This document shows, one piece after another, positions 7,968 through 64,000 of a DNA stretch of 64,000 bases. Both the position numbers and the translations under genes were made by a program. Location of the stretch: NCBI GenBank assembly GCA_965649825.1, contig OZ287710.1, positions 425,639 through 489,638 on the forward strand, in the 5' to 3' direction. The notes under the pieces are model-generated. The model had not been told where the DNA came from. It searched no databases and saw only the letters and a program-made list of their open reading frames with translations. The DNA comes from Penicillus capitatus. Taxonomy: Eukaryota; Plantae; Chlorophyta. How positions within the stretch are numbered: position 1 is the first letter of the stretch; each line of letters opens with the position of its first letter.

Positions 7968-9858
7968 TTATGCGACAGACAGTGTTTTTACCATATAATG
8001 TCCTTCAAGATGGTATCCTAGTTTTCGATAGTAATGTCGTGTGCCGACTCCAGATATAACGACGAGTTTCTGTGATCGATGCTCCTTCATGGCAATCTCC
8101 TCTGCCTTCTCCATGAGTAGCGTTCCGTAGCCTTGATGCTGGAACTTTGTCGTGTCTCGACCGTGGACAGAAACGGCAGTGCCATAGACATGGAGTTCAC
8201 GAATAATGGACGTTTTTCCTCTGAGTTCTGGCTGACGTTGTTTGTCGGGGCCTTGACATTTTCTCAACCTCAACAGTCCAACGAGAATGTCTTTTTGAGG
8301 ATCTTCATAGGCAAGGAATGTCTCCCAGCTTCCGTTTGCTGAATAATCCCTTCGGATAAGCTCCACTTCTGTTGGCCTGATTCGATTGTGAATGTCTTGG
8401 ATGCCCACTTCTCTTGTACGCACGTCGCGGCATCGCAATCCAAATTGAGCCATCCGAGCAAGAGCTAATTCGCGAAGATTGCCCTTCTCCACTCCAGATG
8501 TGACCAAAGGCATCGGGATATCTCGCTGAACACGATAGACACGCACCCATGGGGGCACTAATGCCAAGATCCTGGCAACTAGATCCACCAACTGCACATC
8601 GATAAAGAGATCATCCACCGATCGCCATGAGAGATGTCAGTCGCACTTTGTCAGGGTGATAGTTCTTGTAGAGACCCTTCTTCCATAGCTCATAGAGTCC
8701 AGTTCCTCGAATGACGAGAGTTGGATAGATTTTCAGTCCATCCGTACGAAAATCAGGATTCTCGAAGAACTCTCTGAAGCTCTCTATGTCTCTCTCCCAT
8801 CCAACATTCGGCAGATCAGGCATCATATGAGCAACCACTTTAAATCCAGCATTCTTTGCCAGCTGGAAACATCTCTTCACTGCCTCTACTGTGTGACCAC
8901 GATTTGTATCACGGGCCACATCCTCATATATGCTTTGCAAACCAATTTCCAGCCTTGTGCAACCGTAAGAGAGCATCTGTGTCAGATGTGGCATCTGGCA
9001 GAAATCGGGCCGCGTCTCGATGGTTAGCCCAATGCATTTCGTTCTGCTCTCTTCTGAGTAAACGACAGCTTCCTCCACGTTGCGGGATGTGTGGCCTGAT
9101 AAAGCATCATGGAGGTTGCGAATGAAGTAGTCTCTGTAGTCTAGTGGGAGCGACATGAATGTCCCGCCCATCAAAATAAACTCGACTTTGTCGACGTTGT
9201 GTCCAAGCTTCCTCAGTTGCTCGACTCTGTTTCGAGCTTGAACATATGGATTGTATCTGTGAAGGAGAGGGTACTGAGGACAGTTAACATGAACACAAGA
9301 TCACACACCGTGCACGAATGGCTCTCATGCTCGTAGGCTCATATCCTGTGTAAGACTGTGTGCTGTATTCGAAATCCGAATCGGGTCCCCCTGGACAGTA
9401 AACGCAGATGTTCCCAGTGGTCGCAATGTGTGGACATCGATGTGGCTTTGACATGACAGCGACAACTGCAATGCCAGATGCTGTTCGAACTGGTTTTGCA
9501 CGCAACCTACAATGGAAGCGTTGATATTTCGATTGAGCAGATCTTGCAGACAACTGTGGCAGAAGAACAGATTTGTACTCCTCTGGCACAGCAGCAATAA
9601 TCTCGACGAGCTTTGGTGCGCGACTCAGTCCATATTTCTTTGTCACCTAATCGGGAAGGCGACGTTTTGCATTCTACTACTCTGTCGGGGACCTTTGTTT
9701 TGAGATCATTCAGGTCAAGTGTCTGCCCACGAGTCACTCCGCGAATCAAAACGGTGACGATCTCGGCGACAGCGCGAATTCGATCCTACTACAGCGGGAT
9801 GTTCTCGCAAACGTCTTTTGATCGATGCACTGCCAACCACCTCTTCATTTTTCTTCAT
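7968..9858 (-). CDS. ELP3: Elongator complex protein 3 (radical SAM + histone acetyltransferase), spliced; exact start uncertain
   Basis: [24 protein letters not shown]...[63 protein letters not shown]. Confidence 0.97.
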
Positions 9859-14668: not shown

Positions 14669-16712
14669 ATGTGCGGAATCCTCTGTCTGTTGCGGAAAGC
14701 GGTGATCGACGAGGATGTCCTTCGGGTTTGCGGTCTGACATGCAGTACATGCCGAGAGAATTTCGAGACATTGTACGAAGCAAGAATAGAAGACTTCTAT
14801 GAAACTCTGAGCAGAAGAGGGCCCGATTTATTCGCTCAGATTCAGGTTATGGCTCAGATGATTTCACATGGCGACTGAAAACGGGTGTCTTGTCGATGGA
14901 AGGATGAGGCGGGAGGGGATGAAATCCAGATACACATAGCAGGATCTCTGTTGCAGCTTCGAGGAAAAGAGATTCGCCCTGCCGTGTGCACGGATGACAG
15001 CAAGAATGTACTCGTCTTCAATGGAGAGATCTATGCTGGTCTGGATGTCACTGAGGATGACAATGACACGGAGGCACTCTTCTGTGCACTTCGGGAAGCA
15101 CACCATCCACCAAGTGTGCTGTGATTCAAAGAAGAATGGGTGTCGGATGCGCTTACTGATACCTTTGCAGATATTGTTCATCTGTTCCGTTCCATCAAAG
15201 GACCTTGGTCTTTTGTCTTCTGGAAGCCAGAGAACAAAGAGTTGTGGTTTGGAAGAGATGCCTTTGGTTGATTTCCGACATGTTCTTCTTTGTGTGAGGC
15301 CAACAGATGTGCGTTGTGTTTGTCAGGGAGAAGAAGTCTACTGTTTCATTACGATCCCCGCATTCAGCAATGCATTTTATCATCTACTGTTCCACTGAAC
15401 GGAGATGGCAAGTGGCTGCACACAAGAGAAATTCCTCCTGGAATTTATCGATGGAAAGTATCCAATGCGGAACGGAGAGATTGTCTAAGGATTGAACATC
15501 AGTGGACAGAGATCGTCGCAGCAAGATCTCTGTCGTTTTCATCGATAGAGGTTGCGGCTGATGCATTTCTGGAGAGACTGAGACACTCTGTAAAAGTGAA
15601 GACACATTCTCAGAACAGCAGCCAAGTGAAATGGATCTCCTGCAGATTCGGTATGAAATGGCAAACGCAGCAGCAGACGATCTATCCTCCCCCGTCCTCC
15701 TTCTTTTTAGTGGCGGTGTGGATTCGACATTATTAGCAGCTATGCTTCATGAAGCAATGCCGCATGAATCGCCGATCGATCTGTGCAATGTCACCTTCAA
15801 CAGCGACGAGGCTCCCGACAGAATCAGTACTCTGTCGTGCATATGTCTTTCGAACATGGAGGATATTGCAGATTCGATATCAGCATTGGAGGCGTTGATA
15901 GCATGGGCACCTGAGAGGGAATGGAGATTGATTTGCGTGGACTCTAATCTTGCAGAAATGGAGAGATTCAAGTGGCCTGTTCTCTGTCTGATTTGGATGC
16001 ATTCGTGGTTCCCTTCTAGGGATCGAGTCTTGGCACTTATACGTCCCTGCAACACGATCATGGATATGAACATTGGATCAGCCATTTGGCTGGCAGCACA
16101 GGCAGATGGGTATCTTCATCCCTCAGGCACAACATACACATCTCGTGCTCGAATTGTCTTCGTCGGACATGGTGCTGATGAACAGTGTGCCGGATACGCT
16201 CGTCACCGAACTAAGTGCGAAGCACTTCTCACTGAACCACTTTTTGGAATCACGATTTCAGATATCGAGAGGGGGGATGGTCCTGCGTCGAGGATGAACT
16301 CACTCTTGAGATGTCCAGATTGTGGACGAGAAATCTGGGCAGAGATGATCGACTCATATCAGATCATGGCAGAGAAGCCAGACTTCCCTTTCTCGATGAG
16401 CACGTTGTTTCCTTTCTGCGGCAGATTCCTCTGGAATTTTTGTTCGATCCCAGTCAGCCACGAGGTGCGGATCGACCATTGTATAAAGAAACATTCTGCT
16501 GACCCCCCTGTGATCTAGGCGTTGGAGAGAAGATCCTCCTGCGAGAAGCCCTTCGGCGTTTGGGTCTGGCCAGTATCTCGACAAGAGAGAAGAGAGCAAT
16601 TCAATTTGGGTCTCACATCAGCAAATTAACAAACAGAGATCAGTTTGGCAGCAACAGAGCTGCGAACAGACATCAAGCTGGAACACGTCGTCTTAACAAC
16701 GACAGACCATAA
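14669..16712 (+). CDS. ASNSD1: Asparagine synthetase domain-containing protein (ASNSD1-like), spliced
   Basis: MCGIL N-terminus, LSRRGPD, FNGEIY, FGRDAFG|[48 protein letters not shown]. Confidence 0.9.
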
Positions 16713-16740
16713 CAAATCATGGCATCGCTTCACAATCGCT

Positions 16741-16798
16741 GCCATAACACTGCATCCATCAAGAAACACCGAGTGTTTCCATCATAAACAGTGTAGGC
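16741..16798 (-). other. SECIS-like stem-loop in the 3' UTR of the Rdx selenoprotein (atypically short)
   Basis: Minus-strand RNA: GCCU-ACACUG-UUU-AUGAU-GGAAACAC-UCG-GUGUUUCU-UGAU-GGAUG-CAGUGU-UAU-GGC. This gives helix I, a UGAU/UGAU quartet and an 8-bp helix II, 33-90 nt downstream of the stop. Confidence 0.6.
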
Positions 16799-16830
16799 AA
16801 ACAACTGTTATGCATCGAGTGATATTGTAA

Positions 16831-17180
16831 CTAAGGGTTGTCAGACGTAGAAATAGCCTCAATCTCATCAATGATATTCTTAGCAACCTGTTCAGTGGCA
16901 GAAACAGAATGCGGTTCTCCAGTTTGAAATTTCGACCAAAGAGTGATATCCGTCGCACCACGTCTAACCAGACAAATATTTGCATCCTCTCAAAGAGAAT
17001 GGCCATTGTTTACTTCCAAACGACTTCGAATGCGCCTGTTCGAGGAGCTCCTTGCGGATTCGGACGAATCGCAAAACGGTTCGGGAACTTTGCCTCTAGA
17101 CGATCACGAAGCAGATCGAAACGTGGTGCGTAGTTTCATCTGATGCAGTATTCGATGTCGATATCTTGCTTCGACGCCAT
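16831..17180 (-). CDS. Rdx-family (SelW/SelH-like) selenoprotein, 99 aa, in-frame UGA = Sec at codon 15
   Basis: Exons 17180-17014 and 16963-16831 (50-nt GT-AG intron) total 300 nt: MASKQDIDIEYCIR[U]NYAPRFDLLRDRLEAKFPNRFAIRPNPQGAPRTGAFEVVWKRGATDITLWSKFQTGE... CxxU motif plus GAFEV and WSK. Not in the supplied ORF track. Confidence 0.88.
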
Positions 17181-17370
17181 GACGACGCCTCTTGTTCGAA
17201 TGAGAGCGCGATTTGGACGCGGGTTCCGAAGAACGATTCTCAGTCTATGTGATGCCCGATTTGTCAACATCAGCGAAACCAACGGGGAGATCCAACACTG
17301 GATCGCTCAAAAGCGTTTGGTGAATGAATAAATCGGACATCTCTGGATGAGACGTCGACGCATCATCATC

Positions 17371-17722
17371 ATGCAGCTGTCGACTTCGTTCTTAGGTAAT
17401 CAACTCCGCGCCACTCGTGCGGCCTCTGCACTCAATGCCAGTGGAACGATGTCTACGGCGACGCGCCAAGTGACGACAATGGCCAAGAAGAAAGGCGTGA
17501 GAATGATCGTCACGTTGGAGTGTACAGAAGCACGAGCCCTGGGGAAACCCCCTTCCCGTTATACGACTGAGAAGGTCAGCAAAACGCATCCTAATCACAT
17601 CCTCTCTACTGAGACGGGCCTCTTCTACTGTGCAGAATAAACGCAACACACCGGATCGCCTTGAGCTGATGAAGTACAACCGCTTTTTAAGAAGACACAC
17701 TTTGCATCGAGAGATCAAATAG
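17371..17722 (+). CDS. rpl33: Plastid ribosomal protein L33, nuclear-encoded with transit peptide
   Basis: Transit peptide, then [18 protein letters not shown]...SRYTTEK|[28 protein letters not shown]; 61-nt intron at 17575-17635. Confidence 0.93.
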
Positions 17723-24326: not shown

Positions 24327-26075
24327 ATGAGTTTCACGACAGGATGCCTAACTGAGGGCAACGCCTCTCTTTCCCTTCTGTGTCAACTACCAAATGGTTC
24401 CGTGTGGGGAGCGACGTCGGAAGGCCGCCTGGCGCACTTTTCCGATGACTCTTTTGATGTGTCCTTCCTCCAGACTCGACCCGACGCCTATCTGGAAGTG
24501 TTGCCAGATCGTTTGCTTGCTCCGCGCCATCCTTTGGGATTCTCAGTGAGCTTACTGGATGTTCACGATTCTGGGCTCAAGGCGATCGTCGCTGGCTACG
24601 CTGGAAATCGTCCGCACCTCGCGGTGGCGGATCTACAACAGGGAACCGATTCCAAAGGTCAATTGGAGTACTACACGTACAGTTACTGCGAGGGAGATTT
24701 CATATTCAATCGTGCTGGAATGAAGCTTCAGCAAGTGTCGTGGTGGCCAGAAACAGTTCTTCCTTCGTTTGTTGTCTTGGCTGGCAACATCTTGGCTGTC
24801 TACCAGTCGAGCTCTGTCTCGGTGCCATTGGCAACGTATCGACTTCAATTCTCTCCAGTCTACTATCCATCCACTATCACGGATTGTGGAAATGCAACAG
24901 CTTTCTGTTTCGTCGAGAATGCCAAGGACTGGGGAGCTTTCACCGTCTGTATACTGAGAGACGATGGAGCTGTGTTTGTTCTGTGCCCAGTTGTCGTGTC
25001 GGGATTTCCATTTGGCACATCAGACGCCATTAAACTCTTAAAGGATGAAACACCAGAAATCACGAAGAGATGGCACCATCAGGTCTTTAGCAGAACACAG
25101 CTGCAAGGGAGTGTGGGTAGGGCACATGGGGATGAAGGCAATTTCATCTACACCAGGAATCTTCGTGATGGTTGGAAATACGCACCGGCCTTGCAGGGAC
25201 CCCTGTGCGTAAGAAGGCATCTACAAGAAAGAGATTTCCACTCGATTGTCAGTATGAATGGTGGCAGTTTGGCATTGGCCAACATCAGAGGCACAGTGAT
25301 ACTTGCCAGCATCTCTTCTATCTTGCCAGTGTTTCATGACAAGGAAATGAGATCAGGTGCCCCTCACGTGTTCTTGTTACAGGACTGTGTCCGAACACCC
25401 AGTGATATCAGAATAGAACAATTGTCGGAAACGCGAATGCCCGATCACGAATCGACGACGGTGCAATTCTTAAAAACTCAAGGGCATTCTTATCTCATTG
25501 CAAAGACGGATGGATACACAGCGCAACTTGACTGTTCGGATCCATCTGCTCCGAAGTCCGCTCTTCAGCAGAATGTGCCTGGTAGTCTGGGATGTATCAT
25601 CCGTGGTCCGTTTGTTCTTTCTGTCCTAGTCGCTGGTCATTTTGAGCTCAAGTGTGCATTCCTTCAAAAGCAGCAATACTCTGTTTATCGTTCTCGACTG
25701 CATTCTGGAGTTGAGGAGGTTCAGGAAAAGACAGACGTCGCCTTAGAGAGTGAAGAAGACACACTCGAAAAAATCTTTAGTCTGCAAGAGTTTTTGAAGA
25801 CAGCATTCGAAAAGGAGGATGCTTTCTGTAGAGGGCAAGAACAAACGGTTGGAGATACATCAACAAAAATCTCTCAGCTCCGTGATGGGATCAGCGAACT
25901 GGTTGCTGGTGCAGTGGCATCGGTGGAAAGAAGAGGGAAAGAGAGTCTGTCACAGAAATACAAAGATGTACTCAACGAGATTTGCTCCGAAGTTGAAGCA
26001 CTGGATCCTTCGGCTATGAATTCACCATCAAGACTGCAGCATATCAAAGACTGCCTCAGAGATTTGGGAAGTTGA
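24327..26075 (+). CDS. Probable nucleoporin Nup88/Nup82-like (beta-propeller + coiled coil), intronless 582 aa
   Basis: Single long ORF. QVSWWP and WGAFTVCILRDDGAVFVLCPVV resemble Nup88 propeller motifs; helical C-terminus. Confidence 0.6.
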   Translation: MSFTTGCLTEGNASLSLLCQLPNGSVWGATSEGRLAHFSDDSFDVSFLQTRPDAYLEVLPDRLLAPRHPLGFSVSLLDVHDSGLKAIVAGYAGNRPHLAVADLQQGTDSKGQLEYYTYSYCEGDFIFNRAGMKLQQVSWWPETVLPSFVVLAGNILAVYQSSSVSVPLATYRLQFSPVYYPSTITDCGNATAFCFVENAKDWGAFTVCILRDDGAVFVLCPVVVSGFPFGTSDAIKLLKDETPEITKRWHHQVFSRTQLQGSVGRAHGDEGNFIYTRNLRDGWKYAPALQGPLCVRRHLQERDFHSIVSMNGGSLALANIRGTVILASISSILPVFHDKEMRSGAPHVFLLQDCVRTPSDIRIEQLSETRMPDHESTTVQFLKTQGHSYLIAKTDGYTAQLDCSDPSAPKSALQQNVPGSLGCIIRGPFVLSVLVAGHFELKCAFLQKQQYSVYRSRLHSGVEEVQEKTDVALESEEDTLEKIFSLQEFLKTAFEKEDAFCRGQEQTVGDTSTKISQLRDGISELVAGAVASVERRGKESLSQKYKDVLNEICSEVEALDPSAMNSPSRLQHIKDCLRDLGS

Positions 26076-30037: not shown

Positions 30038-36210
<6,173 letters not shown>

Positions 36211-39374: not shown

Positions 39375-42043
39375 TGTCGCCACCGCCATCCCAGCCGCCA
39401 TTGGAGCAGTCGCCACCGCCGTTTACGCAGCAGTCGCCACCGCCACCATCCCAGTCACCGCCGCAGTAGTCATCACCGCCATTCAGTCTATCTCGTCCTG
39501 TTGCGCCATCCTAGCCGCCGCCGCAGCATTCGACGTCCACACCTGAGGCACCACGACGGGCAAACCAACAAAATATAGTGACGGAAATCCGCCCAAACCC
39601 GTCGCCGGAAGTCCGCCAAGACACTGAACAACGTGGCTTGATACAATCCCTGATGGAAAGTGTTCAAGCGATGCAAGAGGGGCTTATGATACGCGCTGAA
39701 GAACTCGAGGACAGACTTGTCAATAGGCAAGGGAGAATGGAAGAGATTGTAGAGGCCAGCATACTCACTATCGGGCAACGAGTAGAAGCGGTTGAGGATC
39801 GGATGCGAATTCAGCAAGTCGGATGTGAGTCACATCACCCTGAGCCTGAGCCATCGCACGAGAACCAAGAGACAACCGAACGGAAACAGAGTCGACAAAT
39901 ACGTCAGGACTCAGATAAGTGTCGCCCTGGTGAAGCTGTAACTCCACACACTCTAAAAGGCCAGACTCCCACTAGACGCGTTAAGAAGGATGGTCCAACC
40001 ATAAAGAACGTGCACAAGATGTTGCCAAAGCGCAAGGAGAATCTCTCACAGTTCACAGGCATAATGTCGAAGCTGCTCGAATTGATAGATGACCCCGTCA
40101 AGTATGCTACGGCGGCGGAGAGAATCTTTAATATTGCGAACGCACAAATCCAGTCACGTCTGCGTGGATTGCCATGGGGAGATGCAGACATCTGGCCACG
40201 CGTGCAACTGATCATTGACGAATGTCTACAGAAGGAACGGGACAGTCGAGGACACGCCAGGGCCGATGGCAAGCAAAATGTACGTCAAAAAGTTGGACAT
40301 ACCTGCGAGAACTGCGGACGTAAGGACCACTCTAAAAGGGACTGCCCATCAGTCGCAAGAGCTCCCGGACATCAGGATTCTAGAAAGGTCTCCCGGACAA
40401 CACCAGCTCAGGGTCGGAACTCTGCGAGGATGGCGCGCTACAACATCATGCTTGCTATGGAGGACATAGCCGGAAAAATCTATTGTCTGTTGGGTACCGG
40501 GGCCGAGACTAATATTTTCCCAGCCAAGCTGGCGCGTAAACACAATCTAGTGCTCAGGTACGCGAACGTCCAGAGGGTGACCAGCTTCAGCAACCAGACG
40601 ACTAGTACAAGCGGCGAGGTCTGCATGCTGTGTACCCTAGGAAACAAGGGCGCGAAAATACCATTTGTCGTCTGCGAGGGTGTCCAACGTCCTATTCTGG
40701 GACTCCAGGCCCTCCAAGCATTCAAACTGCAGCTCAACTGCGATGAGGACTGCGTGTACGACGACAAAGGCAACAAAATCTTGATCCACAACGTCATTGT
40801 TTCAAAAAACTAAGGTACATGCCTGTTTTTCAGCAGGCACATGACGACACGCAAGAACCGCAGACAAAACGTTTGGTACTAGTAAAAGCCATCTGGAACG
40901 ACGAGACGCCGCACAAAAAACAGGGAGAAAGACCATCACCTTCACCACTCCAAGTCACGGAATCCATCGATCGGGAGTTATTCCCTTTCAAACAAAACGG
41001 CTGGATTGTCTTCATGGCGGGGAGAAGTTTTGTGCTGGGACCTTCCGGAGCCGCCGCATCATCCTACCCTTCAAGTTTGCCGAGACAACAGAATGGAAGG
41101 CATTTTTCGACTGTACCCACAACAAGAACATCATTCTGCACTTTACTTCGCTTTTGCTTAAGGCCCGTGAACTATGCAAACCTTGCAAAGCTTCGCGCGA
41201 AGAGCATGGGCCACTGTGTTCACAGATAGCTCGGCTGACGACACCGAACGACATATTAGCTCGGGCGCGAGTGACTCGGAAGCAGAAGACACGGCACTAG
41301 TCCGGCGGCTACTAGAAAGACCGAACGCAGAAACGGAACTAAAAATGATCCAAACAACGAAGAACAAAGAAAAAGTTAGGCGATAGAAAGACTGGACGAA
41401 GAACTGATGGAACTATTTCCCGCTACCGAAAGCTGGATGGATGGATCATTGAACCTAATTCACGGGAACTGAAAATGATCGAGGAAGCAAAACAAAGAAA
41501 AAGAGTAAGAGCAAAAATGTAGCAGTAAGACGAATACAAAAACGAAGTTACTCAAAACCACTACACATATTATGCCGGGATGTTCATCATCGATTCCTTT
41601 CATCGCTCAATGGAAATTCAAGTCAAGTTATCGGTCTGTTAGCTCCGATAAATAACATCCGAGAAACAATTCGAAAAGTGATAAGGAATCGTAGATTTCG
41701 AAATGAGAAGCCCGAAGACGAAAAATGTCCAGAATTTTTCGAGGAACTCGAGTATAAAATTGCAACCTGTTCTCTTTGGATCCTTTACGACAAAACAGAG
41801 GGTCGGAAGTTTTCTTGAAGAACTGTTGGGAATAGTGCGGGCCTTGAAGAAATGTTACTTTGTGATCAAGCAAACGGAGATATTCGTTTTTGTTACTTAA
41901 TATAGGCAAACGACCGTAATGCGACGCTACCCTATAAAAGCGTTGTAGATGTACAGATCTTGTCTTTCGTTTGTAAGACTTTACGTTTCAAGGTTTACGT
42001 GCGCCCGCCGTTCAAATTGTTTCCATCTAAAACCTACGCGACA
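39375..42043 (+). mobile_element. Degenerate LTR-retrotransposon-like element (Gag, dead protease, RNase H remnant; no RT core or LTR pair found); boundaries approximate
   Basis: Gag zinc knuckle CENCGRKDHSKRDC (40304-40345). Protease LLGTGA (catalytic D>G). RNase H-like PVLFGS...EELLGIVRALKK...IFVFVT (~41765-41900). TATAAAA at ~41933. Ends TGTCGC...GCGACA. Confidence 0.75.
39578..40813 (+). CDS. Retroelement Gag-protease ORF (411 aa; protease inactive)
   Basis: Intronless ORF with coiled coil, CX2CX4HX4C knuckle and retropepsin fold (CLLGTGAETNIF...RPILGLQAL). Confidence 0.8.
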   Translation: MTEIRPNPSPEVRQDTEQRGLIQSLMESVQAMQEGLMIRAEELEDRLVNRQGRMEEIVEASILTIGQRVEAVEDRMRIQQVGCESHHPEPEPSHENQETTERKQSRQIRQDSDKCRPGEAVTPHTLKGQTPTRRVKKDGPTIKNVHKMLPKRKENLSQFTGIMSKLLELIDDPVKYATAAERIFNIANAQIQSRLRGLPWGDADIWPRVQLIIDECLQKERDSRGHARADGKQNVRQKVGHTCENCGRKDHSKRDCPSVARAPGHQDSRKVSRTTPAQGRNSARMARYNIMLAMEDIAGKIYCLLGTGAETNIFPAKLARKHNLVLRYANVQRVTSFSNQTTSTSGEVCMLCTLGNKGAKIPFVVCEGVQRPILGLQALQAFKLQLNCDEDCVYDDKGNKILIHNVIVSKN

Positions 42044-54833: not shown

Positions 54834-57800
54834 ATGACGCCGGCGACACGGTCGAGCGAGGGCGGGGATGCGTCGGCGGGGTCGAGTGGATGCTGACGGA
54901 CCCTTGGTTGGCGACCGACGGCAGCGTGCTCGACCTGTGGCGCGGCCTTTCCGGATTCGACATTTCGGCACACTGCGGCCGACGGAGGGCCCACCGTCGG
55001 CAGTCTTCGACGCAGACGGGTGCGGGACGCCTCGGGACACACCGCGGATGCCAATCGGTGGAGGCTCGTTTGGCTCTGGGCGGTGTCGTACGGAGTTGAA
55101 ATCGTGGCGGTTACGTCGCATCAGGTGTAACCTGGCCTGTAAGTGACTCGCAGAAGTGCACGATGCCGCCGGCGACACGGTCGAGCGAGGGTGGGAATGT
55201 GTCGGCGGGGTCAAGTGGATGCGGACGGACCCTTGGTTGGAGCCCGACGGCGGCGTGCTCGACCTCTGGCGCGGCCTTTCCGGATTCGACATTTCGGCAG
55301 ATTGCGGCCCACGGAGGGCCCACCGTCGGCGGACTTCGACGCAGACGGGTGCGGGACGCCTCGGGACACACCGCGGATGCCAATCGGTGCAAGCTCGTTT
55401 GGCTCTGGGCGGTGTCGTACGGAGTTGAAATCGAGGCGGTTACGTCGCATCAGGTGTAACCTGGCCTGTCAGTACGATCTGGAAGTGCACGACGACGCCG
55501 GCGACACGGTCGAGCGAGGGTGGGGATGTGTCGGCGGGGTCGAGTGGATGCCGACGGACCCTTGGTTGGAGCCCGACGGCGGCGTGCTCGACCTGTGGCG
55601 CGGCCTTTCCGGATTCGACATTATGGCAAACCACGGCCGACGGAGGGCCCACCGTCGGCGGACTTCGACGCAGACGGGTGCGGGACGCCTCGGGACACGC
55701 CGCGGATGCCAATCGGTGGAGGCTCGTTTGGCTCTGGGCGGTGTCGCACTTGGTTGAAATCGAGGCCGTTACGTCGCATCAGGTGTAACCTGGCCTGTCA
55801 GTACGATCCGGAAGTGCACGACGACGCCGGCGACACGGTCGAGCGAGGGTGGGGATGTGTCGGCGGGGTCGAGTGGATGCCGACGGACCCTTGGTTGGAG
55901 CCCGACGGCGGCGTCCTCGGGCTGTGGCGCGGCCTTTCCGGATTCGACATTTCGGAACACTGCGGCCGACGGAGGGCCCACCGTCGGCGGACTTCGACGC
56001 AGACGGGTGCGGGACGTCTCGGGACACGCCGCGGATGCCAATCGGTGGAGGATCGTTTGGCTCTGGGCGGTGTCGTACGGAGTTGAAATCGTGGCGGTTA
56101 CGTCGCATCAGGTGTAACCTGGCCTGTCAGTGACTCGCAGAAGTGCACGACGACGCCGGCGACACGGTCGAGCGAGGGTTGGGATGTGTCGGCGGGGTCG
56201 AGTGGATGCCGACGGACCCTTGGTTGGAGCCCGACGGCGGCGTCCTCGGGCTGTGGCGCGGCCTTTCCGGATTCGACATTTCGGCACACTGCGGCCGACG
56301 GAGGGCCCACCGTCGGCAGTCTTCGACGCAGACGGGTGCGGGACGCCTCGGGACACGCCGCGGATGCCAATCGGTGGAGGCTCGTTTGGCTCTGGGCGGT
56401 GTCGCACTTGGTTGAAATCGTGGCCGTTACGTCGCATCAGGTGTAACCTGGCCTGTCAGTACGATCCGGAAGTGCACGACGACGCCGGCGACACGGTCCA
56501 GCGAGGGTGGGAATGTGTCGGCGGGGTCGAGTGGATGCGGACGGACCCTTGGTTGGAGCCCGACGGCGGCGTCCTCGGGCTGTGGCGCGGCGTTTCCGGA
56601 TTCGACATTTCGGCACACTGCGGCCGACGGAGGGCCCACCGTCGGCAGTCTTCGACGCAGACGGGTGCGGGACGCCTCGGGACACGCCGCGGATCCCAAT
56701 CGGTGGAGGCTCGTTTGGCTCTGGGCGGTGTCGCACTTGGTTGAAATCGTGGCGGTTACGTCGCATCAGCTGTAACCTGGCCTGTCAGTACGATCCGGAA
56801 GTGCACGACGACGCCGGCGACACGGTCGAGCGAGGGTGGGGATGTGTCGGCGGGGTCGAGTGGATGCCGACGGACCCTTGGTTGGAGCCCGACGGCGGCG
56901 TCCTCGGGCTGTGGCGCGGCGTTTCCGGATTCGACATTTCGGCACACTGCGGCACACGGAGGGCCCACCGTCGGCAGTCTTCGACGCAGACGGGTGCGGG
57001 ACGCCTCGGGACACGCCGCGGATGCCGATCGGTGCAAGCTCGTTTGGCTCTGGGCGGTGTCGTACGGAGTTGAAATCGTGGCGGTTACGTCGCATCAGGT
57101 GTAACCTGGCCTGTCAGTACGATCCGGAAGTGCACGACGACGCCGGCGACACGGTCGAGCGAGGGTGGGGATGTGTCGGCGGGGTCGAGTGGATGCCGAC
57201 GGACCCATGTTTGGCGACCGACGGCGGCGTCCTCGGGCTGTGGCGCGGCCTTTCCGGATTCGACATTTCGGCACACTACGGCCGACGGCGGGCCCACCGT
57301 CGGCAGTCTTCGACGCAGACGGGTGCGGGACGCCTCGGGACACACCTAGGATGCCGATCGGTGGAGGATCGTTTGGCTCTGGGCGGTGTCGTACTCGGTT
57401 GAAATCGTTGCCGTTACGTCGCATCAGGTGTAACCTGGCCTGTCAGTACGATCCGGAAGTGCACGACGACGCCGGCGACACGGTCGAGCGAGGGTGGGGA
57501 TGTGTCGGCGGGGTCGAGTGGATGCCGACGGACCCAAGTTTGGCGACCGACGGCGGCGTCCTCGGGCTGTGGCGCGGCCTTTCCGGATTCGACATTTCGG
57601 CACACTACGGCCGACGGCGGGCCCACCGTCGGCAGTCTTCGACGCAGACGGGTGCGGGACGCCTCGGGACACACCGCGGATGCCGATCACCGGAGGCTCG
57701 TTTGGCTCTGGGCGGTGTCGCACTTGGTTGAAATCGTGGCCGTTACGTCGCATCAGGTGTAACCTGGCCTGTCAGTACGATCCGGAAGTGCACGACGACG

Positions 57801-60800
57801 CCGGCGACACGGTCCAGCGAGGGTGGGAATGTGTCGGCGGGGTCGAGTGGATGCCGACGGACCCAAGTTTGGCGACCGACGGCGGCGTCCTCGGGCTGTG
57901 GCGCGGCGTTTCCGGATTCGACATTTCGGCACACTGCGGCCGACGGAGGGCCCACCGTCGGCGGACTTCGACGCAGACGGGTGCGGGACGCCTCGGGACA
58001 CGCCGCGGATGCCAATCGGTGGAGGCTCGTTTGGCTCTGGGCGGTGTCGCACTTGGTTGAAATCGAGGCCGTTACGTCGCATCAGGTGTAACCTGGCCTG
58101 TCAGTACGATCCGGAAGTGCACGACGACGCCGGCGACACGGTCGAGCGAGGGTGGGGATGTGTCGGCGGGGTCGAGTGGATGCCGACGGACCCTTGGTTG
58201 GAGCCCGACGGCGGCGTCCTCGGGCTGTGGCGCGGCGTTTCCGGATTCGACATTTCGGCACACTGCGGCACACGGAGGGCCCACCGTCGGCAGTCTTCGA
58301 CGCAGACGGGTGCGGGACGCCTCGGGACACGCCGCGGATGCCGATCGGTGCAAGCTCGTTTGGCTCTGGGCGGTGTCGTACGGAGTTGAAATCGTGGCGG
58401 TTACGTCGCATCAGGTGTAACCTGGCCTGTCAGTACGATCCGGAAGTGCACGACGACGCCGGCGACACGGTCGGGCGAGGGTGGGAATGTGTCGGCGGGG
58501 TCAAGTGGATGCCGACGGACCCTTGGTTGGAGCCCGACGGCGGCGTGCTCGACCTCTGGCGCGGCCTTTCCGGATTCGACATTTCGGCAGACTGCGGCCG
58601 ACGGAGGGCCGACCGTCGGCAGTCTTCGACGCAGACGGGTGCGGGACGCCTCGGGACACACCGCGGATGCCGATCGGTGGAGGTTCGTTTGGCTCTGGGC
58701 GGTGTCGTACTCGGTTGAAATCGAGGCGGTTACGTCGCATCAGGTGTAACCTGGCCTGTCAGTACGATCCGGAAGTGCACGACGACGCCGGCGACACGGT
58801 CGGGCGAGGGTGGGAATGTGTCGGCGGGGTCAAGTGGATGCGGACGGACCCTTGGTTGGAGCCCGACGGCGGCGTGCTCGACCTCTGGCGCGGCCTTTCC
58901 GGATTCGACATTTCGGCAGACTGCGGCCGACGGAGGGCCGACCGTCGGCAGTCTTCGACGCAGACGGGTGCGGGACGTCTCGGGACACACCGCGGATGCC
59001 GATCACCGGAGGCTCGTTTGGCTTTGGGCGGTGTCGTACTTGGTTGAAATCGTGGCGGTTACGTCGCATCAGGTGTAACCTGGCCTGTCAGTACGATCTG
59101 GAAGTGCACGATGACGCCGGCGACACGGTCCAGCGAGGGTGGGAATGTGTCGGCGGGGTCGAGTGGATGCCGACGGACCCTTGGTTGGAGCCCGACGGCG
59201 GCGTGCTCGGGCTGTGGCGCGGCCTTTCCGGATTCGACATTTCGGCACACTGCGGCCGACGGAGGGCCCACCGTCGGCAGACTACAACGCAGACGGGTGC
59301 GGGACGCCTCGGGACACGCCGCGGATGCCGATCGGTGCAAGCTCGTTTGGCTCTGGGCGGTGTCGCACTTGGTTGAAATCGAGGCCGTTACGTCGCATCA
59401 GGTGTAACCTGGCCTGTCAGTACGATCCGGAAGTGCACGACGACGCCGGCGACACGGTCCAGCGAGGGTGGGAATGTGTCGGCGGGGTCGAGTGGATGCC
59501 GACGGACCCTTGGTTGGAGCCCGACGGCGGCGTGCTCGGGCTGTGGCGCGGCCTTTCCGGATTCGACATTTCGGCACACTGCGGCACACGGAGGGCCCAC
59601 CGTCGGCAGACTACAACGCAGACGGGTGCGGGACGCCTCGGGACACACCGCGGATGCCGATCGGTGCAAGCTCGTTTGGCTCTGGGCGGTGTCGTACTTG
59701 GTTGAAATCGAGGCCGTTACGTCGCATCAGGTGTAACCTGGCCTGTCAGTACGATCTGGAAGTGCACGATGCCGCCGGCGACACGGTCGGGCGAGGGTGG
59801 GAATGTGTCGGCGGGGTCGAGTGGATGCCGACGGACCCTTGGTTGGAGCCCGACGGCGGCGTGCTCGGGCTGTGGCGCGGCCTTTCCGGATTCGACATTT
59901 CGGCAGACTGCGGCCGACGGAGGGCCCACCGTCGGCAGACTACAACGCAGACGGGTGCGGGACGTCTCGGGACACACCGCGGATGCCGATCGGTGGAGGT
60001 TCGTTTGGCTTTGGGCGGTGTCGTACTCGGTTGAAATCGAGGCGGTTACGTCGCATCAGGTGTAACCTGGCCTGTTAGTACGATCTGGAAGTGCACGATG
60101 CCGCCGGCGACACGGTCGGGCGAGGGTGGGAATGTGTCGGCGGGGTCAAGTGGATGCGGACGGACCCTTGGTTGGAGCCCGACGGCGGCGTGCTCGACCT
60201 CTGGCGCGGCCTTTCCGGATTCGACATTTCGGCAGACTGCGGCCGACGGAGGGCCGACCGTCGGCAGTCTTCGACGCAGACGGGTGCGGGACGTCTCGGG
60301 ACACACCGCGGATGCCGATCACCGGAGGCTCGTTTGGCTTTGGGCGGTGTCGTACTTGGTTGAAATCGTGGCGGTTACGTCGCATCAGGTGTAACCTGGC
60401 CTGTCAGTACGATCTGGAAGTGCACGATGACGCCGGCGACACGGTCCAGCGAGGGTGGGAATGTGTCGGCGGGGTCGAGTGGATGCCGACGGACCCTTGG
60501 TTGGAGCCCGACGGCGGCGTGCTCGGGCTGTGGCGCGGCCTTTCCGGATTCGACATTTCGGCAGATTGCGGCCGACGGAGGGCCCACCGTCGGCAGACTA
60601 CAACGCAGACGGGTGCGGGACGTCTCGGGACACACCGCGGATGCCGATCGGTGCAAGCTCGTTTGGCTTTGGGCGGTGTCGTACTTGGTTGAAATCGAGG
60701 CCGTTACGTCGCATCAGGTGTAACCTGGCCTGTCAGTACGATCTGGAAGTGCACGATGACGCCGGCGACACGGTCCAGCGAGGGTGGGAATGTGTCGGCG

Positions 60801-63800
60801 GGGTCGAGTGGATGCCGACGGACCCTTGGTTGGAGCCCGACGGCGGCGTGCTCGGGCTGTGGCGCGGCCTTTCCGGATTCGACATTTCGGCAGATTGCGG
60901 CCGACGGAGGGCCCACCGTCGGCAGACTACAACGCAGACGGGTGCGGGACGTCTCGGGACACACCGCGGATGCCGATCGGTGCAAGCTCGTTTGGCTTTG
61001 GGCGGTGTCGTACTTGGTTGAAATCGAGGCCGTTACGTCGCATCAGGTGTAACCTGGCCTGTCAGTACGATCTGGAAGTGCACGATGCCGCCGGCGACAC
61101 GGTCGGGCGAGGGTGGGAATGTGTCGGCGGGGTCGAGTGGATGCCGACGGACCCTTGGTTGGAGCCCGACGGCGGCGTGCTCGGGCTGTGGCGCGGCCTT
61201 TCCGGATTCGACATTTCGGCAGATTGCGGCCGACGGAGGGCCCACCGTCGGCAGACTACAACGCAGACGGGTGCGGGACGTCTCGGGACACACCGCGGAT
61301 GCCAATCGGTGGAGGCTCGTTTGGCTTTGGGCGGTGTCGTACGGAGTTGAAATCGAGGCCGTTACGTCGCATCAGGTGTAACCTGGCCTGTCAGTACGAT
61401 CTGGAAGTGCACGATGCCGCCGGCGACACGGTCGGGCGAGGGTGGGAATGTGTCGGCGGGGTCGAGTGGATGCCGACGGACCCTTGGTTGGAGCCCGACG
61501 GCGGCGTGCTCGGGCTGTGGCGCGGCCTTTCCGGATTCGACATTTCGGCAGATTGCGGCCGACGGAGGGCCCACCGTCGGCAGACTACAACGCAGACGGG
61601 TGCGGGACGTCTCGGGACACACCGCGGATGCCAATCGGTGGAGGCTCGTTTGGCTTTGGGCGGTGTCGTACGGAGTTGAAATCGAGGCCGTTACGTCGCA
61701 TCAGGTGTAACCTGGCCTGTCAGTACGATCCGGAAGTGCACGATGCCGCCGGCGACACGGTCGGGCGAGGGTGGGAATGTGTCGGCGGGGTCGAGTGGAT
61801 GCCGACGGACCCTTGGTTGGAGCCCGACGGCGGCGTGCTCGGGCTGTGGCGCGGCCTTTCCGGATTCGACATTTCGGCAGATTGCGGCCGACGGAGGGCC
61901 CACCGTCGGCAGACTACAACGCAGACGGGTGCGGGACGTCTCGGGACACACCGCGGATGCCAATCGGTGGAGGCTCGTTTGGCTTTGGGCGGTGTCGTAC
62001 GGAGTTGAAATCGTGGCCGTTACGTCGCATCAGGTGTAACCTGGCCTGTCAGTACGATCCGGAAGTGCACGACGACGCCGGCGACACGGTCGAGCGAGGG
62101 TGGGGATGTGTCGGCGGGGTCGAGTGGATGCCGACGGACCCTTGGTTGGCGACCGACGGCGGCGTGCTCGACCTGTGGCGCGGCCTTTCCGGATTCGACA
62201 TTTCGGCACACAGTGGCCCACGGAGGGCCGACCGTCGGCGGACTTCGACGCAGACGGGTGCGGGACGCCTCGGGACACACCGCGGATGCCAATCGGTGGA
62301 GGATCGTTTGGCTCTGGGCGGTGTCGTACGGAGTTGAAATCGTTGCCGTTACGTCGCATCAGGTGTAACCTGGCCTGTCAGTACGATCCGGAAGTGCACG
62401 ACGACGCCGGCGACACGGTCGAGCGAGGGTGGGGATGTGTCGGCGGGGTCGAGTGGATGCCGACGGACCCAAGTTTGGCGACCGACGGCGGCGTCCTCGG
62501 GCTGTGGCGCGGCCTTTCCGGATTCGACATTTCGGCACACTACGGCCGACGGCGGGCCCACCGTCGGCAGTCTTCGACGCAGACGGGTGCGGGACGTCTC
62601 GGGACACACCGCGGATGCCGATCACCGGAGGTTCGTTTGGCTTTGGGCGGTGTCGTACTTGGTTGAAATCGAGGCCGTTACGTCGCATCAGGTGTAACCT
62701 GGCCTGTCAGTACGATCTGGAAGTGCACGATGCCGCCGGCGACACGGTCGAGCGAGGGTGGGAATGTGTCGGCGGGGTCGAGTGGATGCCGACGGACCCT
62801 TGGTTGGAGCCCGACGGCGGCGTTCTCGGGCTGTGGCGCGGCCTTTCCGGATTCGACATTTCGGCAGATTGCGGCCGACGGAGGGCCCACCGTCGGCAAT
62901 CTTCGACGCAGACGGGTGCGGGACGTCTCGGGACACACCGCGGATGCCGATCGGTGGAGGTTCGTTTGGCTTTGGGCGGTGTCGTACTCGGTTGAAATCG
63001 AGGCGGTTACGTCGCATCAGGTGTAACCTGGCCTGTTAGTACGATCTGGAAGTGCACGATGCCGCCGGCGACACGGTCGGGCGAGGGTGGGAATGTGTCG
63101 GCGGGGTCAAGTGGATGCGGACGGACCCTTGGTTGGAGCCCGACGGCGGCGTGCTCGACCTCTGGCGCGGCCTTTCCGGATTCGACATTCGGCAGATTGC
63201 GGCCGACGTGGGCCCTCCGTCGGCAGACTACAACGCAGACGGGTGCGGACGTCTCGGGACACACCGCGGATGCCGATCGGTGCAAGCTCGTTGGCTTTGG
63301 GCGGTGTCGTACTCGGTTGAAATCGAGGCCGTTACGTCGCATCAGGTGTAACCTGGCCTGTCAGTACGATCTGGAAGTGCACGATGCCGCCGGCGACACG
63401 GTCAGGCGAGGGTGGGAATTGTCGGCGGGGTCGAGTGGATGCCGACGGACCTTGGTTGGAGCCGACGGCGGCGTGCTCGGGCTGTGGCGCGGCCTTTCCG
63501 GATTCGACATTTCGGCAGATTGCGGCCCACGGAGGCCCACCGTCGGCAATCTTCGACGCAGACGGGTGCGGGACGCCTCGGGACACACCGCGGATGCCGA
63601 TCACCGGAGGTTCGTTTGGCTCTGGGCGGTGTCGTACGGAGTTGAAATCGTGGCGGTTACGTCGCATCAGGTGTAACCTGGCCTGTCAGTGACTCGCAGA
63701 AGTGCACGACGACGCCGGCGACACGGTCGAGCGAGGGTTGGGATGTGTCGGCGGGGTCGAGTGGATGCCGACGGACCCTTGGTTGGCGACCGACGGCGGC

Positions 63801-64000
63801 GTCCTCGGGCTGTGGCGCGGCCTTTCCGGATTCGACATTTCGGCACACTGCGGCCGACGGAGGGCCACCGTCGGCAGTCTTCGACGCAGACGGGTGCGGG
63901 ACGTTTCGGGACACGCCGCGGATGCCAATCGGTGGAGGTTCGTTTGGCTTTGGGCGGTGTCGTACTTGGTTGAAATCGTGCGGTTACGTCGCATCAGGTG
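54834..64000. repeat. 329-bp tandem satellite, ~28 copies, continues past window end
   Basis: Equivalent positions recur every 329 nt (ORF starts 55520, 55849, ... 63087). GC-rich; roughly 45-50 CpG per unit by hand count. Unit core gttacgtcgcatcaggtgtaacctggcctgt. Confidence 0.98.

Follow-up and report, generated by a model that had tools for sequence, protein, structure and literature searches.

A truncated SECIS-like stem-loop without an apical AA motif downstream of a SelW-like selenoprotein gene in the green alga Penicillus capitatus

We analysed a 64,000-nucleotide (nt) stretch of genomic DNA from the green alga Penicillus capitatus (contig OZ287710.1, positions 425,639 to 489,638 of the forward strand), called the window below and numbered from its first letter. 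On its minus strand, a Rdx/SelW-like gene with an in-frame UGA is followed by a stem-loop at 16808-16732. On balance, we interpret this stem-loop as the selenocysteine insertion sequence (SECIS) of that gene's mRNA, in a variant that is real, conserved and truncated. The gene, its in-frame UGA, the fold, its strand specificity, the absence of a canonical element and the retention of the architecture in one relative are direct observations. A first-pass annotation of this DNA had suggested a non-canonical SECIS here. That suggestion has gained a gene for a selenocysteine (Sec) protein, a strand-specific fold and a second instance of the short form, in a relative, but the element breaks the established rules for the apical AA and its spacing.

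The gene and its UGA lie as follows.
16831-17180, minus strand: Rdx/SelW-like selenoprotein gene, from hand-spliced translation, a Pfam match and identity to homologues
17136-17138, minus strand: in-frame UGA (codon 15), predicted to encode the selenocysteine of a C-I-R-U motif, from alignment with homologues

The coding sequence starts with an ATG at 17180 and runs through exon 1 (17180-17014), a 50-nt GT..AG intron (17013-16964) and exon 2 (16963-16834) to a TAG stop at 16833-16831. In size and ends the intron resembles those of the ELP3 gene on the same contig (GT..AG, ~50-55 nt). The hand-spliced translation gives 99 residues, beginning MASKQDIDIEYCIRUNYAPRF, and matches the Pfam Rdx family (PF10262; SelW/SelT/SelH) over residues 7-74 with E = 2e-11 and a score of 44.4 bits against a cut-off of 22.6. 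The matched domain spans the UGA, and the bulk of the match comes after it. By BLASTP, the product is 34-36% identical to Sec-containing homologues, with both exons covered. The frame stays open for 84 codons past the UGA, through the correctly phased intron, and because the open reading frame (ORF) has no Met codon 3' of the UGA, translation must cross it. Judged from its sequence, then, this must be a genuine, intact Sec-type gene that is decoded through UGA.

A DNA pattern for YCxxUNYxPR, searched against JGI metagenome contigs, matched at least 120 contigs (L003-L122). Among the matches listed, 119 of 120 are true Sec-Rdx homologues with TGA at that position, and the UGA of the Penicillus gene aligns with the UGA of at least 119 metagenomic Rdx genes that share the motif. 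The first-pass annotation had spoken of a clear selenoprotein, and the Rdx match, the aligned UGAs and the lack of a later Met bear this out. As a side observation, the pattern is almost perfectly specific among the matches listed, where the encoded proteins have ~80-95 residues and the contigs are nearly all prokaryotic (GC 27-75%), five being prasinophyte-like; the eukaryotic gene described here is a member of a 'bacterial-type' Rdx subfamily, with the motif IEYCIRUNYAPR. No SelW-like gene of a close relative was present among the pattern matches listed, and neither a word-indexed protein search nor a protein-based scan of the JGI metagenomes with the SelW-like protein returned a match.

By the sequence evidence, the genetic code of this genome is standard. 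TGA is 2.7 times commoner than either other stop triplet in the window (2049 TGA against 762 TAA and 756 TAG over positions 1-54000, both strands), and because of this excess many non-coding frames are free of TAA and TAG for hundreds of codons. Yet TGA is absent within the window's genuine coding ORFs, which rules out UGA as a general sense codon for Cys or Trp. In the code of the Dasycladales, which are among the closest named relatives, UAR encodes Gln and UGA is the sole stop; under such a code the SelW-like ORF would extend into the hairpin. The gene for the Elongator subunit ELP3 argues otherwise. It aligns to Caulerpa ELP3 over 535 codons with no in-frame stop, all 22 of its 22 Gln codons are CAA or CAG, and its TAA stop falls within 3 codons of the Caulerpa C-terminus. 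These Gln codons, together with a TAA at the homologous end, rule out a Dasycladales-type code. The same gene (7980-9785, minus strand, with at least 4 introns of ~43-55 nt) is the window's best lineage marker, the protein being 87% identical to that of Caulerpa lentillifera, 85% to those of Neomeris/Acetabularia and 83-84% to those of other chlorophytes.

The stem-loop begins 22 nt past the TAG stop, and in the spliced mRNA it lies 300 nt from the UGA. Its parts are these.
16732-16808, minus strand: whole stem-loop including the outer helix, 77 nt, from the minimum-free-energy fold
16789-16794, minus strand: helix I, 5' strand ACACUG, from the fold; the helix is kept in the relative
16747-16752, minus strand: helix I, 3' strand CAGUGU, from the fold
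16781-16785, minus strand: 5' half of the core, AUGA (16785-16782) plus U 16781, from sequence and the UGAN/KGAW consensus
16762-16780, minus strand: helix II, GGAAACAC (16780-16773) paired with GUGUUUCU (16769-16762), 8 bp, with the loop UCG (16772-16770), from the fold
16753-16761, minus strand: 3' half of the core, UGAU (16761-16758), plus the 3' internal loop GGAUG, from sequence

Read from 16794 down to 16747, the inner hairpin is ACACUG UUU AUGA U GGAAACAC UCG GUGUUUCU UGAU GGAUG CAGUGU, with UUU as the 5' internal loop between helix I and AUGA. An outer helix, ACAGUUGUU..GCC against GGC..AGCGAUUGU, extends it to 16808-16732 by pairing 16808-16800 and 16798-16796 with 16743-16741 and 16740-16732. 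Four pairs in the whole structure are G.U, three in the outer helix and one at the base of helix II. The UCG loop begins 9 nt after AUGAU, the distance from AUGA to GA is 21 nt, and the sole AAA (16778-16776) is base-paired. The core AUGAU / UGAU fits the UGAN/KGAW consensus in sequence and is followed by a U.U pair; the internal loop has UUUAU (5 nt) on one strand and U GGAUG (6 nt) on the other, with no 3-nt bulge of the kink-turn (K-turn) type. All the parts listed by the first-pass annotation (helix I, the core quartet, an 8-bp helix II, the UCG loop and the paired AAA) are present. It had left the strand unstated, and the hairpin reads as it described solely on the minus strand.

The succession of helix I, internal loop and helix II is a well-supported fold (z = -3.8 to -5.2). 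On the minus strand, 81 nt fold at -31.6 kcal/mol (z = -5.2), none of 200 dinucleotide shuffles folded as well, and the 80-nt segment with the hairpin ranks 30th of 10,784 across the first 54 kb on both strands (108 kb), in the top 0.3%. The complementary strand reaches -18.5 kcal/mol and loses the outer helix, which forms on the minus strand only because three of its pairs are G.U. The structure is specific to minus-strand RNA.

We described the hairpin by two descriptors, both set post hoc, so their figures are indicative only. The strict one, set after the hairpin had been seen, requires ATGA-N, a helix II of at least 8 bp, N-GA and a helix I of at least 6 bp, and 0.175 matches are expected per 108 kb of shuffled sequence. 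The relaxed one, set after the relative described below had been seen, allows a helix II of 8-10 positions with at most 1 mismatch, a loop of 3-8 nt and a helix I of at least 5 bp; 0.8 matches are expected per 108 kb shuffled, and the real 108 kb holds exactly one, at 16785. The hairpin sequence is single-copy in the window, and neither the relaxed descriptor nor a two-sequence covariance model found a second copy in the 64 kb. One hairpin copy agrees with one selenoprotein gene in the window. Two further ATGA...GA hairpins, at 33184 and 40797 (both minus strand), satisfy a loose descriptor, their loops measuring 21 and 42 nt; the first is in an RNA polymerase I large-subunit gene region, the second in a gag-like ORF, and both were taken as chance.

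The same short form occurs in a relative, which was reached through the gene on the opposite strand.
16519-16712, plus strand: last exon and TAA stop (16710-16712) of a convergent ASNSD1-like gene, from sequence

Pfam PF00733 is recorded for the 295-residue ASNSD1-like ORF and its homologues. The protein is 37% identical to its Caulerpa counterpart, and its best match anywhere, at 55% identity, is the homologue P0002, encoded on the 1,273-nt JGI metatranscriptome contig Ga0099817_1346191 (L123; sample 3300008031). This transcript continues for 106 nt past the ASNSD1 stop (1168-1273). The antisense of this 3' untranslated region (3'UTR) reads UGUUG CU AUGA U AGCCAUCUC AUCC GAGAUUGCU UGAA GUGAA CAGCA, within a further outer helix, and the hairpin stands in the same place relative to ASNSD1 as the one in the window. 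Helix I is UGUUG/CAGCA; helix II spans 9 positions, one of them a C.U mismatch, and is capped by the 4-nt loop AUCC, which has no AA. From AUGA to GA the distance is 24 nt. The core letters AUGAU and UUGA are identical in the two hairpins and the U.U pair is kept; the 3' core continues as UGAA and then GUGAA, so that the box-like letters outside AUGAU/UUGA are not conserved. Three other ASNSD1 homologues tried for synteny (P0004, P0005 and P0006) come from unrelated high-GC algae and have no convergent arrangement.

We aligned the two hairpins by hand, padded but ungapped and fitted to the structure. In this alignment of the window and the relative, pairing is kept in 27 of 28 cells. Compensatory changes, affecting both sides, occur in 6 of the 15 pairs: four in helix II (of the 8 shared pairs) and two in helix I. 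Two more pairs show compatible one-sided changes. When the partners were slid by 1-3 columns as a control, pairing fell to 26-54% and compensatory pairs to 0-2. In the 106 nt of the relative's 3'UTR, the relaxed descriptor has one match, at this hairpin, where ~8e-4 would be expected. The check for covariation that the first-pass annotation had called for thus yielded a short, AA-less form with compensatory changes, although from a single relative and a fitted alignment.

These data bear on whether the hairpin is a coincidence, the SelW-like gene being a decaying or untranslated relic, or its UGA being bypassed in some other way, and the likeness in the relative being accidental. Such a view can point to conservation drawn from two sequences, to descriptor statistics that are post hoc, and to a covariance model from a single sequence that failed to link the two hairpins. 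But a relic sits poorly with 84 open codons past the UGA, a phased intron and family similarity throughout, and a chance hairpin with a place in the top 0.3% of local folds, with exactly one descriptor match in each of two short intervals where ~8e-4 are expected per interval, and with 6 of 15 pairs compensatory. The shared architecture and the compensatory changes in the relative argue against a chance hairpin, and we consider this explanation quite unlikely.

A second question is whether the minus strand is the relevant one. The structure might instead act on the plus strand, in the ASNSD1-like 3'UTR or as a DNA palindrome or bidirectional terminator, with the AUGA/GA of the minus strand incidental. 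An inner 7-bp palindrome and helix I do form there as well (-15.9 to -18.5 kcal/mol, z of -3 to -4), and the sole transcript evidence, from the relative, is on the ASNSD1 strand. Against this, the G.U pairs (four in the window, two in the relative) become A.C on that strand and the outer helix is lost. The energies favour the SelW-sense strand in both species, at -31.6 against -18.5 kcal/mol in the window and -22.4 against -15.7 kcal/mol in the relative, where the plus-strand z is -0.2. Furthermore, the minus strand of each species has AUGAU and UUGA on either side of helix II, for which we estimate a chance of ~1/4096 per species for a hairpin at a fixed position. Both this explanation and that of chance are weakened by the asymmetry of the G.U pairs, by the AUGAU/UUGA core that the two species share and by the compensatory changes; the plus-strand reading we judge very unlikely.

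If the stem-loop is the SECIS of this gene, no better candidate should be at hand. A canonical element follows the rule NTGA, 10-13 nt, unpaired AA (or CC), 15-39 nt, GA (PMC2375036), with the core consensus UGAN/KGAW (PMC3753652). We scanned from 17400 to 15600 for any NUGA core with an unpaired AA or CC 9-15 nt above it, and no canonical SECIS was found, whether in the gene and its intron, in the 5' region or in the 1.2 kb downstream. The first-pass annotation had called the hairpin the only SECIS-like fold downstream of the CxxU gene, and these scans produced no credible other; a canonical SECIS further downstream, which it had named as the finding that would count against its proposal, did not appear within the 1.2 kb. 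A candidate at 16621 has a CUGA core and two mismatches in an 8-9-nt helix, which is the noise level of controls. A second ATGA, at 16720, has an AA hairpin nearby, but this is 22 nt from the core and there is no helix II; both were rejected. Over the whole window, a canonical pattern with an ATGA core gave five weak matches, none by a gene that needs a SECIS, and no other convincing UGA-containing ORF with a redox motif was found in the window. The space itself is limited. From the SelW-like stop to the convergent ASNSD1-like stop there are 118 nt (16713-16830), filled by the 77-nt stem-loop, and on this sequence layout a further element in the SelW-like 3'UTR could be accommodated only within the coding exons of ASNSD1, in antisense. 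The gene has no other K-turn-type stem-loop at its disposal.

How much this absence means can be judged from homologous genes. The five eukaryotic, prasinophyte-like contigs from the YCxxUNYxPR search (L060, L073, L079, L099 and L063; GC 44-57%, with transit-peptide-like N-termini) served as positive controls. Behind their Rdx genes, 100-250 nt past the stop, stand canonical type II SECIS elements with a GUGA core, a 12-13-nt helix II strand, an unpaired AAAA and a mini-stem. The canonical pattern scan recovers those of L099 and L063 with zero helix II mismatches; because it detects such elements, their absence at the SelW-like gene is informative. Since homologous prasinophyte-like genes carry canonical elements, the ancestral SECIS of this Rdx family in green algae therefore appears, from these sequences, to have been ordinary. 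A weak covariance-model match in L073 (6311-6355) was set aside, with no UGA-containing ORF upstream of it.

Rfam gave no SECIS or small nucleolar RNA (snoRNA) match, either in the whole window at gathering score or around the gene at E <= 10. As an observation on the tool, Rfam release 15 does not report the GUGA-core type II elements of L060, L099 and L063 even at E <= 10. Its negatives on green-algal SECIS elements therefore mean little, and we discount the one obtained here for the same reason.

Several points nevertheless weigh against the stem-loop being a SECIS. The core lacks the unpaired AA or CC that should stand 10-13 nt above it and that defines the apex, while helix II is ~4 bp too short. 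In mammalian SECIS elements, mutagenesis that alters the AAR motif or its spacing abolishes Sec insertion. The failure of Rfam to match the hairpin is a further, weak point. A tRNA scan of the window found none, hence no tRNA-Sec, and no gene for the Sec machinery was found in the window. The case from conservation consists of two sequences and a structure-fitted alignment. The relative's fold is thermodynamically ordinary (z of -1.2 to -1.6), and a covariance model with the window hairpin as its sole sequence did not recover the relative's hairpin at E <= 10. Finally, that contig covers just the last ~10 codons of the convergent gene, and its tail, QTILTNEGS* against EAISTSDNP* here, shows a loose likeness, at most suggestive of a SelW-like orthologue.

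Alternatively, the hairpin might be a conserved K-turn for some other protein of the L7Ae family, or might act in the overlapping 3' ends of the two genes, in 3'-end formation, stability or regulation of the sense/antisense pair, with the true Sec signal elsewhere and unrecognised. Two defining traits of a SECIS, the apical AAR and a helix II of sufficient length, are missing, the hairpin lies where two 3'UTRs overlap, the relative's ASNSD1 transcript spans it, and a plus-strand TGTAA stands beyond it. Several L7Ae-type proteins bind K-turns (PMC3706390). On the other side, the hairpin occupies the 3'UTR of a UGA-containing Rdx gene and has a SECIS-type core whose internal loop is large, in place of a 3-nt bulge, both of which a SECIS requires; and a general 3'-end element should recur, yet no second copy stands behind genes in the 64 kb. 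A different function would also leave the SelW-like gene without any recoding signal, since the scans of the gene with its intron and 5' region, and of 1.2 kb downstream, yielded no other candidate. We regard this possibility as unlikely. The first-pass annotation had offered a generic K-turn as the alternative to a SECIS, but since the SECIS core is itself a K-turn-like motif, the two do not truly compete.

Its other alternative, a box C/D-like element, does not hold up. The consensus of box C is RUGAUGA and that of box D is CUGA. AUGAUGG matches box C at 6 of 7 positions and UUGA matches box D at 3 of 4, with the same K-turn polarity. However, all that stands between the boxes is a self-paired 19-nt hairpin, without a guide sequence; box C lacks its second GA; no Rfam snoRNA family matches at E <= 10; and the box-like letters past AUGAU/UUGA are not conserved in the relative. 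With no guide region, imperfect boxes and no Rfam match, we give a box C/D snoRNA-like element almost no credence.

If we return to the stem-loop as a SECIS, its action can be sketched on the model of known elements. A K-turn-like motif would be made up of helix I, the AUGA-U / U-GA-U core and the internal loop between them. We propose that tandem sheared G.A/A.G pairs and the U.U pair could form in the core of both species' hairpins, as their sequences allow. This motif may then recruit SECIS-binding protein 2 (SBP2), which would bring eEFSec with Sec-tRNA(Sec), and the UGA 300 nt upstream would be read as selenocysteine, presumably with no need for an AAR motif.

Compared with canonical type I elements (Rfam RF00031; the NTGA_AA_GA pattern of SECISearch), the hairpin has the same location, in the 3'UTR of a UGA-containing selenoprotein mRNA, and the same lower half: helix I, an internal loop, the AUGA...GA core, U.U and helix II above. 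The spacing from UGA to element, 300 nt here, is likewise ample. The upper half differs. Canonical elements have a helix II of ~12-14 bp, an unpaired AA(R) or CC and at least 27 nt from AUGA to GA, whereas here helix II has 8-9 bp, the apical loop has 3-4 nt and neither motif, and the distance is 21-24 nt. Every described eukaryotic SECIS has an unpaired AA(R) or CC and a fixed helix II distance besides the K-turn core, and prediction tools filter on both (PMC3753652, PMC2375036). The hairpin would be thrown out by SECISearch-type filters as 'helix 2 too short' and 'apical loop too short' (PMC3753652, PMC2375036). In the literature searched, we found no description of a SECIS that lacks the AAR motif as well as the length of helix II.

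The closest elements by gene family are the Mamiellophyceae-like type II GUGA SECIS elements of our controls (L060/L073/L079/L099 and L063), which serve the same IEYCxxUNYxPR subfamily in the broad green lineage and share the 3' core context U-UGAU-GG. They are fully canonical, and the Penicillus hairpin stops where their helix II is two thirds complete. SECIS-like elements of the eukaryotic kind (eSECIS-like) in Asgard archaea also have a K-turn-type AUGA_GA core close to the stop in a compact genome, and their search models allow upper stems down to 7 bp (PMC4989117, PMC11227280). Their apical loops, however, are 8-20 nt long and start with conserved adenines, in contrast to the 3-4 nt without adenines here, and our host is a eukaryote with spliceosomal introns. 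L7Ae-family kink-turns (box C/D, U4 snRNA, the L30 site) resemble the hairpin in their tandem G.A/A.G pairs flanked by U.U, with a canonical stem outside, a non-canonical stem inside and a short, capped inner helix. They have a 3-nt bulge, whereas the hairpin has a roughly symmetric internal loop of 5 nt and 6 nt, a SECIS-type feature; it also has no guide sequence and sits in a selenoprotein mRNA 3'UTR.

It is tempting to generalise from this one gene and propose that an ulvophycean, siphonous-seaweed-like clade inserts Sec by means of a 'mini-SECIS', consisting of a K-turn core, an 8-9-bp helix and a 3-4-nt loop, with neither AAR nor a helix II 'ruler'. We offer this tentatively, as an idea that may well prove too broad. 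As the first-pass annotation inferred, much of the selenoproteome of this lineage may plausibly escape standard tools. In a survey of Archaeplastida, some selenoprotein genes had no predicted SECIS, for which the authors suggested 'lineage-specific characteristics' as a cause; Ulva was the sole member of the Ulvophyceae sampled (PMC6627142). If the mini-SECIS is real, it would account for green-algal selenoprotein genes without a detectable SECIS, and the selenoproteomes of the clade, and perhaps of others, would have been under-counted by SECIS-first pipelines. It would also mean that the apical motif and its spacing, usually taken as universal requirements for eukaryotic Sec decoding, can be done without if SBP2, eEFSec or the ribosome is of the right kind, predict that one of these is co-adapted in these algae, and provide a minimal natural system for studying the role of the AAR motif and of helix II as a 'ruler' in Sec decoding. 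The hairpin also offers a simple descriptor for re-scanning ulvophyte genomes: AUGA-N, 8-10 bp, a loop of 3-8 nt, N-GA. If, on the other hand, the hairpin is inactive, this would be a rare, seemingly intact Sec gene without a working signal, of local interest only.

Around the stem-loop, the convergent ASNSD1-like and SelW-like genes have overlapping 3' ends (16713-16845), with the plus-strand TGTAA (16826-16830) at the end of the SelW coding sequence. The relative's ASNSD1 transcript likewise crosses its hairpin into the neighbouring gene (L123 1168-1273). Across the SECIS-like element, the mRNAs of the two genes would form a natural antisense pair. On the other side of the SelW-like gene, divergent from it and ~160 nt away, lies a nuclear gene for the organellar ribosomal protein bL33 (17340-17720, plus strand; Pfam L33, E = 5e-20), which in a hand-made model has an N-terminal extension and two introns.

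The remaining features lie farther to the right. A 582-residue ORF without a Pfam match (24327-26075, plus strand; loci L001 and L002) also occurs on a second contig of the same assembly, ctg332811_14x_l (41 kb, coverage 14x against 47x, ENA ERZ25074695), which suggests a second haplotype or strain over the right-hand part of the window. From 54836 to 64000 the window consists of a satellite with a 329-bp unit in at least 27.9 tandem copies at 94% identity, which continues past the window's end and has a GC content of ~65% against 48% in the rest of the window. A 411-residue ORF (39578-40813, plus strand) has a weak CCHC zinc knuckle, is gag-like and is probably part of a retrotransposon.

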